From sequence record ON529853.1: a stretch of DNA of 64,000 nucleotides; one strand, written 5' to 3'. The notes beneath the pieces are model-generated. The model saw nothing but the letters and a program-made list of their open reading frames with translations. It did not search any database and was not told where the DNA came from. Positions within the stretch are counted from its first letter, which is position 1. Each line of letters begins with the position of its first letter. This document shows positions 21,182 to 31,155 of the stretch, piece after piece. A program made the translations under genes and the position numbers.

Positions 21182-22381
21182 GTGAGCACCTTTGCTGTTC
21201 CGATCCTCGCGATCGACGACGTCTACGATCACCCCAACGCTGATCGCCTCTCCATCATCCGTATTCGCGGCTACGAAGCCGTCGCCGGCAAGGCCGAGGA
21301 CGGCTCGCACCGCTTCGCCAAGGGCGAGCGCATCATCTACGTGCCCGAGGGCGCGGTGGTGCCGGACCAGCACCTGAAAGAGCGCGGATACTGGAACGAG
21401 GCCAAGGGCGTCGGTCTGCTGGCGGGCACAAAAGGCAACCGCGTCAAGGCCATCACCCTGCGCGGGGTGCTGAGCCAAGGCCTGGTGTGGAAATCCTACC
21501 GGCTTCCGGGTGAATCGCTGTTCAGCGATCGCGTGCACGCTTCCTACTCGGCGGGTGAGGGTCGCGTGGCCCTGCACACCTACGGCGTCGGCGACGACGT
21601 CGCCGACTTCTTCGGCATCACCAAGTACGACCCGCCGATCCCGCCGGGCCTGGACGGCGACGTCGTCGGCATCTTCGAATCGATGTTCAACTACGACATC
21701 GAGAACGCCAAGGCCTTCCCGAACCTGTTCACCGAGGACGACATCGTCACGGTGACGGAGAAGCTGCACGGCACCTTCTGCCGCATGACCTACATGCCCG
21801 GCATCGAGCCGCGCGAGGACCTGTTCGGCGACGGCCGCGTGGCGATCACCTCCAAGGGTCTGGGCGCCGACGGCCTGGTGTTCAAGAACACCGCCTTCAA
21901 TCGCCAGAAGAACGTCTACGTGCGCAACATGCTGCCCCTGGTGGACCACTTCGTCTCGGCCTGCAACCAGGACGCCAAGGGCCTGACGGTTCACCTGATG
22001 GGCGAGGTCTACGGAGCCGGCGTGCAGGACCTGAAGTACGGTCGCACCGAGGACCAGGGCTTCGCCGCCTTCGACGTCTGGATCGAGAAGTCGGGATTCC
22101 TGGCCGAGGTCGAGAAGGACTACGCCTGCATCGCCTTCGGGGTGGAGCGAGTGCCGGTCCTGTTCGAGGGCTTCTACGACAAGGCGCTGATCGAAGACTT
22201 CGCCAAGGGCGACACCACGATCGACGGCGCCGAGAACATCCGCGAAGGCGTCGTCGTGACCCTGACCGGCGAGCAGGACAAACGCCCCGACGGCAACGGC
22301 CTGGGCGGCACCCTGCGCCCGATCTGCAAGGTCGTGTCGGAAGCCTACCTGACCCGCAAGGGCGGGACCGAACTGCAATAG
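21182..22381 (+). CDS. RNA ligase, Rnl2/DRB0094-like family
   Basis: N-terminal HPNADRL OB-like domain, TEKLHGT (motif I), GEVYG, FDV and REGVV. Confidence 0.85.
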   Translation: MSTFAVPILAIDDVYDHPNADRLSIIRIRGYEAVAGKAEDGSHRFAKGERIIYVPEGAVVPDQHLKERGYWNEAKGVGLLAGTKGNRVKAITLRGVLSQGLVWKSYRLPGESLFSDRVHASYSAGEGRVALHTYGVGDDVADFFGITKYDPPIPPGLDGDVVGIFESMFNYDIENAKAFPNLFTEDDIVTVTEKLHGTFCRMTYMPGIEPREDLFGDGRVAITSKGLGADGLVFKNTAFNRQKNVYVRNMLPLVDHFVSACNQDAKGLTVHLMGEVYGAGVQDLKYGRTEDQGFAAFDVWIEKSGFLAEVEKDYACIAFGVERVPVLFEGFYDKALIEDFAKGDTTIDGAENIREGVVVTLTGEQDKRPDGNGLGGTLRPICKVVSEAYLTRKGGTELQ

Positions 22382-25180: not shown

Positions 25181-25510
25181 ATGCATACCCGTAATCCAGA
25201 AGAGTTCTCACGCATCCTCGACGAGGCGGCCGAGTATATCGCGCGGCAGCCGATCCATCCCGGCCAGACCATGCCGGGGCTGTGGAGCCTGGATGACGGC
25301 TCGCACGAGCCGGCGCGGCTGATCGGCGTGATCGTGGCCCTGGCGCTGGCGCAGGTCTGCAAGGCCGGCGATTGCGACCTCCAGGCCGCGCTCTCCAGCT
25401 ACGCCGCCGTCACCCACAACATCCCCCTGATCGCCAAGGGCGGGCCGGACGTGATCGCCGCGCAGAACCTGCGCGACGCCGCCCGGACCCTGCGAGAAGC
25501 GAGTCACTGA
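25181..25510 (+). CDS. Hypothetical protein
   Basis: ATG at 25181, ends before the terminator. Confidence 0.55.
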   Translation: MHTRNPEEFSRILDEAAEYIARQPIHPGQTMPGLWSLDDGSHEPARLIGVIVALALAQVCKAGDCDLQAALSSYAAVTHNIPLIAKGGPDVIAAQNLRDAARTLREASH

Positions 25511-25515
25511 CACGA

Positions 25516-25549
25516 AAAAGGCCCGTCGCTGTCGAGCGCCGGGCCTTTG
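25516..25549. terminator. Bidirectional terminator closing the RNA island
   Basis: AAAAGGCCCG...CGGGCCTTTG. Confidence 0.7.
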
Positions 25550-25556
25550 ATCGTGA

Positions 25557-25643
25557 TGGAGGTGCGACCTGGACTCGAACCAGGATGAGGGTTTCCCCTA
25601 CGGCTTATGAGGCCGCTGCCTATTCCAGCCGCGCCACCGCACC
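25557..25643 (-). tRNA. tRNA with CAT anticodon and long variable arm (Met or Ile2 unresolved)
   Basis: Acceptor GGTGCGG/TCGCACC + TCCA; anticodon arm GCGGC-CTCATAA-GCCGT; variable arm AGGG-GAAA-CCCT; T arm CCTGG-TTCGAGT-CCAGG. The D stem is weak. Confidence 0.7.
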
Positions 25644-25644
25644 A

Positions 25645-25830
25645 AAAAGAAGTCCAGGCGTGCTCCCGTTACACTAAACCGGCGAGGGTCATGACCCTCG
25701 GGCGCCGGCTGCGGGGTTGAACCGCTCTGCCTGTGTTTCCGCCGCTGCGCCATGCGAGCGCCGGCCGCGAAGCCAACGCCTGAGGGCTCGAACCCCGGCG
25801 ACGAAGATTCGGACCAGCCCGTCGGCCGGT
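25645..25830 (-). ncRNA. Two tandem circularly permuted tRNA-like modules (YrlA-like)
   Basis: Each reads T arm, then loop-closed acceptor stem, then D arm. Example: GCGG-TTCAACC-CCGC, AGCCGGC..GCCGGTT, GTGT-AACGGGA-GCAC. Confidence 0.5.
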
Positions 25831-25873
25831 CCACGAACGCCGCTGCGCCGAGGGAGGCGCCGAGGCGATCGAA

Positions 25874-25951
25874 TGGGAGCGGGGACACGATTCGAACGTG
25901 CGATCTCTTGGTTATGAGCCAAGAATGTTGACCGGGCTACACTACCCCGCG
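25874..25951 (-). tRNA. tRNA-Met(CAT), initiator-like
   Basis: CGCGGGG 5' end with 1:72 mismatch, CTTGG-CTCATAA-CCAAG, GCACG-TTCGAAT-CGTGT, encoded CCA. Confidence 0.85.
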
Positions 25952-25962
25952 ACTCTTAGGCG

Positions 25963-26263
25963 CCAGTTCCGACGGCAGTGCGCCGGCTGGTACTCAACGG
26001 ACTCCTCCGCCGACCCTGCGCCAGGAACCATGGCAGACACAGGATCAAGACGAAGGCGTTGCTTTACACCCACCTTGGACGTCGGACCCGTCGGGCCGAC
26101 GAAACTTTGACCAGGGGTTGTGGGACGAGTAATCCCGCCCTCTGGCCCGGCGGACTACTAGGCCTGCCCTTGCCTGGGCTCCCCCAGACGTCCGGCACGA
26201 CTTTTGGTCAACCAACCTTTACTCACGGAGACGGACGTAGCACCCGGCGTGGATCGGAACTGG
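25963..26263 (-). ncRNA. Unassigned structured RNA of about 300 nt
   Basis: Ends pair (CCAGTTCCGA/TCGGAACTGG, then CGCCGG/CCGGCG). No credible ORF. It lies between the tmRNA and tRNA-Met. Strand inferred from neighbours. Confidence 0.5.
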
Positions 26264-26339
26264 TAGGCCCCTCTCCTGAACGGGCCGCCGTGCTCTGGCG
26301 GTGGTCCGTCGTCATCGCCGCCGGCGTCCGCCTGCGAGA

Positions 26340-26685
26340 GTAAAGTGGGGAACTTTCTGTTCCAAGGCCCGGCAAGCCGGGGTTCCCCATACCCGTGGTC
26401 GCCCTTAGGCGGCCAGGAGGACTCGTTCGCCAGCGGCGAAGTTGTCGTTGTGTGCTTCGACAGTTGTCAAAGTTGGATCGTGAGCAGCCCGAAGACCACC
26501 ATGCAGACCCTAGCACTCGCCATTCAATCCCGTCACCAACGTCAATCGATACTGTTCGGCCCCTCAAACCGCGCCCGTCTCCCATTATAGGAGGGGGATT
26601 GGTGGAGCCGACGGGATTCGCACCCGTGTCTTGTCCGTCTGTTTCGTTCTCTCTGCTTCGGTCCGAAGACCTCCGCGCGACGAAA
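26340..26685 (-). ncRNA. ssrA: Two-piece (circularly permuted) tmRNA
   Basis: The acceptor piece ends ...CCCGTCGGCTCCACCA at 26600. After an intervening segment the coding piece starts GGGGCCGA at 26563, giving G3:U70. Tag frame 26455-26405 reads AHNDNFAAGERVLLAA*. Outer boundaries are approximate. Confidence 0.9.
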
Positions 26686-26689
26686 TGCC

Positions 26690-26729
26690 TGTATACAGAG
26701 TCCGTTTCTGAGTGTCAAGCATTACGTCA
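26690..26729 (-). promoter_or_regulatory. Sigma70-like tmRNA promoter
   Basis: TTGACA-17 nt-TATACA. Confidence 0.8.
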
Positions 26730-26738
26730 AAGATTTTT

Positions 26739-26825
26739 TGGAGGGACGGGTGAGAATCGAACTCACGCCAGGCTTTCGCCAGGAGGATTTGCAGTCCCCC
26801 GCCTTACCACTCAGTCCACCGTCCC
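26739..26825 (-). tRNA. tRNA-Cys(GCA) with long variable arm
   Basis: GGGACGG/CCGTCCC + TCCA (U73); GGGGA-CTGCAAA-TCCTC; GGC-GAAA-GCC variable arm; GTGAG-TTCGATT-CTCAC. Confidence 0.85.
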
Positions 26826-26831
26826 CTGGTG

Positions 26832-26973
26832 TCGTTCTGGAGAGGGGAGCCCGCCCGTATCCGCCGCAGGTCCCGTGGTCGGTCCCGGCGGCGTCAGGGT
26901 TTCACGGCCCCAGGTCGACCCTCTCCCGTGATAGAGGGCGATACGCTGCGGACGGGCTCGCCTCTCCAGACGA
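26832..26973. ncRNA. Unassigned rod-shaped RNA of about 140 nt
   Basis: TCTGGAGAGGGGAGCCCG pairs with CGGGCTCGCCTCTCCAGA, with internal hairpins. Confidence 0.45.
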
Positions 26974-27205
26974 GAAGGACCGCCCTGTTGCACTCCCCGG
27001 AGGGATCGTGTGGCGGCCCGTGACCCTCGTCTTATAGCAGAGGCGCCCCGACCCCGCAACCGGGAAATGCCGGCTATGTCGAAAATCCCGACACTTCCCG
27101 CCCATTTTGACAAGAAAATAGAGGATTGAACTTTATGTTAAGTCGTGCTACGCTCTTCGAGCGGCCGACATTAGTGCGCCGCGTCCTGCCAACGGAGACA
27201 ACCAG

Positions 27206-29064: not shown

Positions 29065-30450
29065 TCAGCCGACGACGTTTCCGTCCGAGAAATCCATCGC
29101 TTCGACTTCCCGGATATAGCGCAGGACGCTCTCCGAGAAGCCGTCGATGTGGACCCACCCGTTGCCGTACCCGACACCATTCTGGTGGCTGGCGACGTTG
29201 ATCATATAGGCCTTGCCGGCCTTAGGCGCCGGCAGTCGTCCTCCGCCCATGGTGCTGCTCAGGGCGCCGTTCGCCTGTTCGTCAGTGATGACGATCAGGC
29301 GGTCGCAGGCGAACTGGCGGTTCACCACGTCCACGGCCTGGGCCAGGGCGGTGCCGTTGTGCGGCTGCGAACGGATCACCGCATCGACCCCCGCCATGCC
29401 CTTGCGGGCCGGCACTTCCACGAGGCCGTTGGAGAAGGTCACGACGCGCACGTCGCCCGGCAGGATCGACGCCAGCGTCGCCGCCGCGTCCATCCGGGTC
29501 AGGTCCGACTTTCCGGACAGCTTGTTCCGCATGGAATAGGAGACGTCGACCATGACCACGGTCGATCCCGTGAAGGGTTCGGCCTGGTTGATCGAGGCCA
29601 CCAGGGCGTCGTCCAGCGCCCGCTCGAACGAGGGCGCATAGCGCGCCGCCGCCGTGAAGCGGAAGGGCAGGACGCGATCCGCGCCCTTGCGCGCCCGGAT
29701 CGCGGCGTTGACCAGATCGCGATCGACGCCGGCCTGCTCCATGTTGCGCAGGTTGCGCAGCAGGGCGAGGTAGCCCAGCTTGCCGTCGGTCAGCAGACGC
29801 GTGAACGTCGCCTTCTTGTCCGCGCCGCCCGACAGGGCGACTTCCCAGGTGTCGGGCGCCGCCAGTTCGTTGTCGACCAGCTTCTTGTAGAGGGTCTCGC
29901 GGTCATCGTTCGCCGGCTTGGCGTGCGCCAGGAACAGGACGTCGCGCAGACGCACCGACTTGGCCCGATCGTATTTGGCGATCTGGTAGGCGTCGAAGTT
30001 GCCGAAGGCCATCGACAGGCCCTTCTTCACCTGGGCCGACAACGGCGCCTTCTTGCCGTTCGAGCGCAGCGGGTTCAGCGCCCAGTAGAGGGCCAGGAAC
30101 TCGCTCAGTTCGTCAGCGCGCTGAATGACGCGCGCGATGGTGAGCGACACCAGGGCCGAACCTGAGCCGCGCTGGGCCAGCACGACGAGCAGCAGAAGGG
30201 GAACGTGACGCAGCTTGGCGTCCTCGCGGGCCTCGACGGCGATCTGGGCGAGGGTCTCGACCGGAACCTCCTTGGCGAGGCTCTGGATACGGTCGGCGAT
30301 CGACACGCCGCTCTCGTAGAAATTGTCTTCCCAGAGCAGGCAGGACATGACCGACCGGCGCAGGGCCTGCGTCTTGGTCATCCGATCGGCCGGCGCGCCT
30401 TCATGAGTTCGCGCGGTGGTCGCTTTGGGCTTTGCGTTGATCGACGCCAT
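29065..30450 (-). CDS. rsr: Ro60/Rsr TROVE-domain RNA-binding protein with C-terminal vWA domain
   Basis: THEGAPA, LRRSVMSCLLWEDNFYESG, KY, TWEVALS, LGYLALLRNLRNM, VLPFRF and MIDAS-like VDVSYSM...ITDEQ. SD AGGAGG upstream. Confidence 0.9.
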   Translation of the reverse strand: MASINAKPKATTARTHEGAPADRMTKTQALRRSVMSCLLWEDNFYESGVSIADRIQSLAKEVPVETLAQIAVEAREDAKLRHVPLLLLVVLAQRGSGSALVSLTIARVIQRADELSEFLALYWALNPLRSNGKKAPLSAQVKKGLSMAFGNFDAYQIAKYDRAKSVRLRDVLFLAHAKPANDDRETLYKKLVDNELAAPDTWEVALSGGADKKATFTRLLTDGKLGYLALLRNLRNMEQAGVDRDLVNAAIRARKGADRVLPFRFTAAARYAPSFERALDDALVASINQAEPFTGSTVVMVDVSYSMRNKLSGKSDLTRMDAAATLASILPGDVRVVTFSNGLVEVPARKGMAGVDAVIRSQPHNGTALAQAVDVVNRQFACDRLIVITDEQANGALSSTMGGGRLPAPKAGKAYMINVASHQNGVGYGNGWVHIDGFSESVLRYIREVEAMDFSDGNVVG

Positions 30451-30661: not shown

Positions 30662-30812
30662 CTCTCCGGCGCTCTGGTAGGAAGGCGGGGGAACATACGC
30701 AGCCGGATAGCGGGATCGAACCGCGAGACCGGGGGTTTGAATCCCGGCTTATCAACCAGCGATGTAACCGACCGCTTTCACCACCCGCCCACCAACCAGG
30801 GCGCCGGAAAAG
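30662..30812 (-). ncRNA. Y-RNA-like element with T-loop
   Basis: Roughly 25-bp imperfect terminal stem, GTGGTGAAAG motif, T arm GCGG-TTCGATC-CCGC. Confidence 0.65.
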
Positions 30813-30817
30813 CAGAA

Positions 30818-30970
30818 ACATGAAGGCGGTGGGGGAATAAGCGACCCCACTCTTTTTTAGGCGTGCTACCGTTACACCAAACGCCGCTAGGCGACGTTGC
30901 GGAATCGAACCGCTCATCCCGCTCCACATGCGATGAAAGTGACGTCTGTCGCCACCCACCGCCTTCATGC
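30818..30970 (-). ncRNA. YrlA-like Y RNA (permuted tRNA domain)
   Basis: 16-bp terminal stem GCATGAAGGCGGTGGG/CCCACCGCCTTCATGT; GTGGCGACAG motif; T arm; loop-closed acceptor stem AACGTCGC-CTA-GCGGCGTT; D arm GTGT-AACGGTA-GCAC. Confidence 0.75.
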
Positions 30971-30979
30971 TGTTGGTCC

Positions 30980-31155
30980 AGAAGCGTATGGTGGATCGAC
31001 AGGGGAACCGGCGGAAAGGCGCCGTTTGGACTATCGTTCTAACCAACTGAACTACCGCCGCGCCCGAGGGTGCGCCGGGTGGGACTCGAACCCACGACCT
31101 ACAGTGTGCGAAGAATGCCTCTCCTTCACCACCTGTCGACCCGCCATACGCTTCT
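30980..31155 (-). ncRNA. YrlA-like Y RNA (permuted tRNA domain)
   Basis: 24-bp terminal stem; GTGGTGAAGG motif; T arm GTGGG-TTCGAGT-CCCAC; loop-closed acceptor stem; D arm GTTC-AGTTGGTTA-GAAC. Confidence 0.8.

Follow-up and report, generated by a model that had tools for sequence, protein, structure and literature searches.

The RNA gene cluster of phage Bambus

The DNA analysed here, called the window, is a stretch of 64,000 nucleotides that corresponds to positions 186001-250000 of the 348 kb genome of the Brevundimonas jumbo phage vB_BpoS-Bambus (ON529853.1; Dolichocephalovirinae). Over the 4 kb around the RNA genes described here, the two sequences are 100% identical. The minus strand of the window carries an RNA operon in which tRNA-Cys, a two-piece tmRNA, the candidate stretch studied here, tRNA-fMet, tRNA-Met and a terminator follow one another. 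Of these genes, only the three tRNAs are annotated in the phage record, and the tmRNA was reported as undetected in the source paper on these phages (PMC10070969). The features of the operon are listed below.

26825-26739, minus strand: tRNA-Cys
26346-26662, minus strand: two-piece (permuted) tmRNA (Rfam RF04321, 57.9 bits for a gathering score of 47; RF01849, 49.8 bits, local match)
26662-26405, minus strand: match of the tmRNA to RF04321, the tag stop codon ending at 26405
26345-26217, minus strand: hairpin H1 (covariation, pair table of 14 loci, pairing probability)
26214-26148, minus strand: domain A, an irregular hairpin (RNAalifold consensus, segment identity)
26147-26109, minus strand: domain B, a hairpin (compensatory change, segment identity)
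26100-26081, minus strand: hairpin C, GUCGG...CCGAC, specific to the Bambus group
25952-26080, minus strand: variable spacer that reaches the RNase P site of tRNA-fMet and contains both 3' arms of the helices drawn in the original prediction
25951-25874, minus strand: tRNA-fMet, directly downstream (ARAGORN; Rfam tRNA, 53.2 bits)
Between tRNA-fMet and the second CAU tRNA: spacer of 230 nt
25643-25557, minus strand: second CAU tRNA (tRNA-Met)
25537-25521, minus strand: terminator-like site after the last tRNA, the sole one on this strand

An unassigned RNA of 300 nt had been proposed, from the sequence, between the tmRNA and the initiator tRNA. This location was confirmed, the stretch being flanked by the permuted tmRNA (RF04321, 26662-26405) and by tRNA-fMet (25951-25874). 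The last tmRNA pseudoknot ends at ~26346 and the RF01849 (alpha_tmRNA) model at ~26344, as placed by comparison with phage CcrPW. A search of positions 25400-27000 with the Rfam covariance models at E values up to 10, a check suggested along with the proposed RNA, assigned no family to the stretch, and its BLAST comparison with the remainder of the window yielded only noise and no copy. The interval between the tmRNA and tRNA-fMet yielded no terminator-like site on the minus strand, which implies that RNase P cleavage and the 3' maturation of the tmRNA would have to free or trim the RNA of the stretch. The arrangement of the genes suggests that the stretch belongs to one minus-strand transcription unit.

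Just 5' of the tmRNA, a TTGACA-17 nt-TATACA element (26690-26718, minus strand) resembles a promoter of the tmRNA unit. It is kept in Kikimora and Gurke (with GCTATACA); a simple sigma-70 scan did not report it. The second CAU tRNA (25557-25643) and the GCA (Cys) tRNA (26739-26825), both on the minus strand, are each 87 nt long with a long variable arm and carry, as read by eye, a discriminator U and an encoded CCA; the pair is present in all the relatives fetched.

The comparison covered the close Bambus relatives Marchewka, Domovoi, Papperlapapp and Kabachok, and, as other relatives, Kikimora, Gurke, CcrColossus, CcrPW, RB23, phiCbK, Magneto, Rogue, CcrBL10, Bajun and the IMG/VR contig L017, the one useful new lineage provided by a helicase-anchored IMG/VR search. 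The order tmRNA, gap, tRNA-fMet, tRNA-Met was kept in every Dolichocephalovirinae phage fetched, and the order led by tRNA-Cys recurs in relatives. The tag stop codon and tRNA-fMet were 174-179 nt apart in Bajun, phiCbK, Magneto and Rogue, 208, 269, 296-299 and 362 nt in other relatives, 441 nt in Kikimora and 453 nt in Bambus. Such a range, from 174 to 453 nt, indicates that everything after H1 is dispensable for the tmRNA.

Hairpin H1, directly 3' of the tmRNA

H1 begins at the base right after the last tmRNA pseudoknot, in Bambus as in all the lineages having it. Its base helix of ~20 bp is formed by 26345-26325 with 26237-26217 and contains an always-unpaired C at 26334, with the consensus 5' YUUYCGCAGGCGGG on one side and CCCGUCUNCGRAAR 3' on the other. 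An asymmetric loop separates this base from a predicted extension formed by CCGGCG (26324-26319) and CGCCGG (26249-26244), and the top of the hairpin is branched. When the full 453 nt from the tag stop codon to tRNA-fMet were folded, the mean pairing probability was 0.93 for the H1 base and 0.88 for its extension. Folding of the regions after the stop codon, each taken singly, gave the same long hairpin directly 3' of the pseudoknot in all the lineages but Bajun.

The pairs of H1 were tabulated in 14 phage loci, each anchored on CGCAG. Positions -9 to +11 were paired in nearly all 14 loci, with more than one type of pair at 13 positions, and the C at +2 was unpaired in every locus, facing U, C or A. 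The formal count of covariation, made on alignment A2 for the 18 pairs from -9 to +9, showed 92.6% of the cells paired and changes on both sides in 11 of the 18 pairs. In 500 shuffles neither the pairing nor the covariation ever rose to the observed value, and sliding the register by 1-3 columns left only 41-50% of the cells paired. The covariation spans eight lineages of phiCbK-like phages. Judged from these alignments, H1 is a well-supported conserved hairpin. It lies outside both tmRNA family models, RF04321 ending at ~26405 and RF01849 at ~26344. Phage tmRNA genes are known, and the sequence following them was not previously described: our literature search found no description of the region 3' of this tmRNA, nor an earlier description of H1.

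The stretch directly follows a bona fide permuted tmRNA of the alphaproteobacterial two-piece type (RF01849/RF04321), on the same strand and with no terminator between them. H1, A and B of the phage all lie outside the two Rfam models, and nothing corresponding to H1 was present in the four bacterial alpha-type tmRNA genes in which it was sought. In one such bacterial gene, read by eye, the pseudoknot is followed by a terminator-like hairpin and then U's at the place of H1, whereas the phage version continues into tRNA genes. H1 has no U-run, and transcription is consequently expected to continue into tRNA-fMet. Its position at the place of the host terminator, the missing U-run, the two helical turns and the fixed mismatch together suggest that H1 directs an endonuclease cut or stops 3' exonucleases. 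RNase III processing stems occur in phage and rRNA precursors, for example at the R1.1 site of phage T7. The base of H1 resembles them in its length of about two helical turns (~20 bp), in its single conserved mismatch and in its place between two mature RNAs of one precursor, and its double-stranded helix of ~20 bp is conserved as structure; this likeness is an analogy of shape only.

The CGCAGG motif of H1 is absent from Bajun, in which only short hairpins are present between the tmRNA and tRNA-fMet, so that H1 is not universal in the subfamily. The tmRNA of Bajun is annotated, and its tag is identical to that of the IMG/VR contig L017. Scanning of IMG/VR with two H1 motifs added only one RB23-like genome to the known phages. 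The H1 motif gave 37 matches in the species genome collection, in unrelated taxa and never near a tmRNA, those that were scored being mostly poorly paired in the H1 register; a 19-mer from H1 gave 51 matches in JGI metagenomes, none of them related.

The smaller phiCbK-like phages and the Colossus group (seven loci) share a conserved UCUGUCGG in the apical loop of H1, and L017 has UCUCGGGG in its place. The Bambus and Kikimora groups carry GAUGACGACGG at the place of the apical loop, the top of H1 being greatly enlarged.

Domains A and B and the spacer after them

Domain A starts 2 nt after H1 and domain B directly after A, the linkers being of 0-2 nt. Domain A is composed of an inner stem-loop (GUCUGGG-GGAG-CCCAGGC) and an internal loop, in which an A-rich strand faces a strand with an invariant AGUA. 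In the RNAalifold consensus it shows four one-sided changes, and all four variable pairs remain standard pairs. Domain B encloses the hairpin GGGA-UUACUCG-UCCC and contains one compensatory change, A-U to G-C (26143/26113), between the Bambus and Kikimora groups. Hairpin C shows a compensatory change from U-A to C-G in Kabachok, and Kikimora and Gurke do not retain it. Segment by segment, Bambus and Kikimora were identical to the following extent.

26346-26662, tmRNA: 84-97%
26217-26345, H1: 87%
26148-26216, domain A segment: 84%
26105-26147, domain B segment: 77%
25952-26104, last third (153 nt): 47%
Intergenic DNA and the other tRNA spacer: 45-48%

This stepwise drop of identity outward from the tmRNA indicates that the conserved unit extends from the tmRNA through domain B and that the 3' third is a spacer. 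Compared at the sequence level, the last ~150 nt are at the intergenic background, and in Kikimora and Gurke the spacer after the hairpins shows several indels, one of them an 11-nt deletion. Sequence conservation in A and B extends to their unpaired stretches; this exceeds what a passive spacer would need and makes a separate function possible. The fold of the two domains rests on few changes, since they are carried by only two diverged lineages.

In Colossus and CcrPW, H1 is followed by three hairpins, two of which share short strings with A and B; a homology of these hairpins with A and B is possible. The smaller phages have, after H1, one hairpin of 45 nt in phiCbK and one of 12 nt in Rogue. 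As most relatives are devoid of A and B, the two domains are not needed for the tmRNA. They would represent a lineage-specific add-on, on which selection seems to act in the Brevundimonas jumbo phages. In IMG/VR, 6 and 50 matches were obtained with two motifs from domain A, all by chance, and BLAST of H1 with A and B against 401 alphaproteobacterial genomes gave short GC-rich chance matches only.

Contigs from a wastewater run (X4) were 90-95% identical to H1, A and B over positions 26100-26329 of the window, showing that further relatives exist in sewage. In one of them, positions 26330-26472 were replaced by 145 unrelated letters.

The candidate trailer and the alternative readings

The reading that we favour, at a probability of about 0.6, is that the stretch is a structured 3' trailer of the two-piece tmRNA gene in a tmRNA-tRNA operon, composed of three unlike parts, and not the gene of one closed RNA. 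A single transcript, starting at the tmRNA promoter or at tRNA-Cys, would extend as far as the terminator at 25521, and RNase P would generate the 5' ends of both the tmRNA coding piece and tRNA-fMet. H1 would define or protect the 3' end of the coding piece, either as the target of an endonuclease (RNase III-like, two helical turns) whose cut marks the end of this piece, or by halting 3' exonucleases that trim back from the RNase P cut. A and B may form an accessory module, which is either retained on the coding piece or set free as a by-product, and the last ~150 nt would be a leader of tRNA-fMet that is unconserved and is cleaved off by RNase P. H1, which covaries in eight lineages and replaces the host terminator, would mark how a ribosome-rescue RNA is built into a tRNA operon by the phage. 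It offers a concrete target for mapping the maturation of the two-piece tmRNA, and A and B a small testable candidate for an accessory RNA.

We also propose, tentatively, that the top of H1 with A and B constitutes an undescribed structured RNA module of Caulobacterales jumbo phages, which might alter or stabilise the tmRNA in the host or be released by tRNA-processing enzymes as a regulatory or protein-binding RNA. The tRNA gene cluster of phage T4 encodes stable RNAs of unknown function, species 1 and 2. These are likewise structured non-tRNA segments in a phage tRNA operon, freed by tRNA processing enzymes; unlike them, the Bambus stretch is known here from its sequence alone, and no relation in sequence or structure to species 1 and 2 was seen.

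A more autonomous role, in which A and B are cut from the precursor, possibly together with hairpin C or the top of H1, as a separate stable small RNA acting in trans, for example by protein binding, is conceivable, although we consider it rather doubtful. The conservation of A and B, similar to that of the tmRNA and well above the background, their invariant unpaired stretches and their tight packing speak in its favour, whereas the candidate has neither promoter nor terminator of its own and is missing in most relatives, where the gap after H1 is ~50 nt or less. Furthermore, apart from the phages named above, no copy or relative was found elsewhere in the window, IMG/VR, the metagenomes or the genome collections.

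Among the sequencing runs on record, none is labelled as RNA of Bambus itself. Three very small virome runs labelled as RNA gave contigs on 25649-25806, 25880-26061, 26255-26474, 26272-26668 and 26452-26613, with possible DNA carry-over. None of the contigs from these sparse runs fell on 26062-26254, which argues weakly against a separate small RNA. One contig spans the RNase P site of tRNA-fMet. Two of the runs gave identical contig ends, and the end at 26061 lies near sites varying among the Bambus-group phages; with contigs of low depth ending near such sites, RNA is indistinguishable from DNA carry-over.

The RNA as originally drawn, a discrete molecule of 300 nt (26263-25963) closed by a 10-bp and a 6-bp helix, was found to be very improbable. 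Both perfect helices do exist on the minus strand: CCAGUUCCGA (26263-26254) is fully complementary to UCGGAACUGG (25972-25963), and CGCCGG (26249-26244) to CCGGCG (25986-25981). The 301-nt excerpt folded better than its shuffles when read on the minus strand (z of -3.5) but not when read on the plus strand (z of -1.6), and the pairing probability of the 10-bp helix was 0.99 in the isolated excerpt. However, it fell to 0.00 in the full 453-nt context, as did that of the 6-bp helix, and enforcing the two helices gave -203.4 kcal/mol, compared to -209.7 kcal/mol for the unforced fold, a penalty of 6.3 kcal/mol. When this 453-nt sequence was dinucleotide-shuffled, 12% of the shuffles contained a perfect inverted repeat of at least 10 bp, and for this reason the 10-bp helix is taken as not beyond chance.

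The relatives were just as unfavourable to the closing helix, whose conservation had been proposed as a check. Kikimora and Gurke keep the 5' arm (CCAGCUCCGA), yet nothing near the 3' end complements it, and the best ungapped pairing reached 7 of 10 in non-homologous places. The motif UUCCGAUCC (26259-26251), which shares six bases with the 5' arm, recurs in H1 of phiCbK and Magneto, where the region after H1 is only ~50 nt long and has no 3' arm. In Bambus the 5' arm itself sits in the branched upper part of H1, and the CGCCGG strand, which had been paired with the downstream CCGGCG, has a closer partner within H1. The 3' half of the drawn molecule is unconserved. The closing helix is best taken as a coincidence or, at most, as a peculiarity of the Bambus group.

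What remains of the supposed stand-alone RNA is its setting, in one minus-strand unit, and a part of its structure. Both internal hairpins are present, GUCGG...CCGAC (26100-26081) and GGGA-UUACUCG-UCCC (26136-26122). Its limits and architecture did not hold: its first 47 nt belong to H1, which starts 82 nt upstream of the proposed start, and its last ~150 nt are unconserved. The supposed RNA would partly correspond to the folded tail of the tmRNA gene, followed by an unconserved spacer, and not to a closed RNA. A helix that is striking in the excerpt disappears once flanks and relatives are considered, and the mis-delimited candidate is corrected.

It is also hardly plausible that the stretch encodes a Y RNA-like molecule to which the Ro60 (TROVE) protein of the phage binds at the closing stem. 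The Ro60 ortholog (29065-30450) is encoded 2.8 kb away on the same strand, and Y RNAs have a stem made by their two ends, as in the molecule originally drawn. Unlike YrlA-type Y RNAs, the stretch gave no match to the YrlA or Y_RNA covariance models at E values up to 10 and exhibits no tRNA-like module, and its end stem is unconserved, with no counterpart in Kikimora or Gurke. The only YrlA-like match of the phage lies elsewhere, at 31011-31123 (RF02553), directly upstream of the Ro60 gene.

This match, on the minus strand, scored 32.6 bits (E 3e-4), below the gathering score. Two weak tRNA-like matches, at 30701-30773 and 30890-30963 on the minus strand, are also located upstream of the Ro60 gene. 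The Ro60 ortholog (minus strand) has TROVE and vWA domains and is annotated merely as "RNA-binding protein".

The chance that the stretch is a reduced RNase P RNA is negligible. Besides the location in a tRNA cluster, only a few short strings like E. coli M1 RNA had pointed to it, and they did not survive an alignment test, in which E. coli rnpB aligned locally with a score of 19, the mean of the shuffles being 18.2. RF00010, searched at E values up to 10 in the complete records of Bambus, Kikimora and Colossus, gave no match at this place, its best matches elsewhere being of at most 10 bits for a gathering score of 100 bits. The P4 motif GAGGAAAGUCC is absent from the stretch, in agreement with the original reading that RNase P signatures were not clearly present, and the string closest to it, GGAGGAGUCC, is missing from Kikimora and Gurke through a deletion.

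Equally negligible is the chance of a miniature transposable element, a DNA-level unit bounded by terminal inverted repeats, or of a gene for a small protein, as suggested by the 10-bp terminal inverted repeat and by a 121-aa ORF on the plus strand: copies of the arms, with up to one mismatch, are not above chance in the window (9 matches vs 5.2 expected), no similar stretch is present elsewhere in the window, and the ORF has no PHROG match and, owing to indels of 1, 2, 4 and 11 nt, no matching ORF in Kikimora. The statement that the stretch held no plausible ORF was loosely true, as this ORF (25978-26343, plus strand, GTG start) does exist but without a conserved counterpart in Kikimora. On the same strand, 3.6 kb from the RNA cluster, a gene for an RNA ligase (PF09414 and an OB-fold domain; 21182-22381, plus strand) adjoins that of a SNF2-type helicase.
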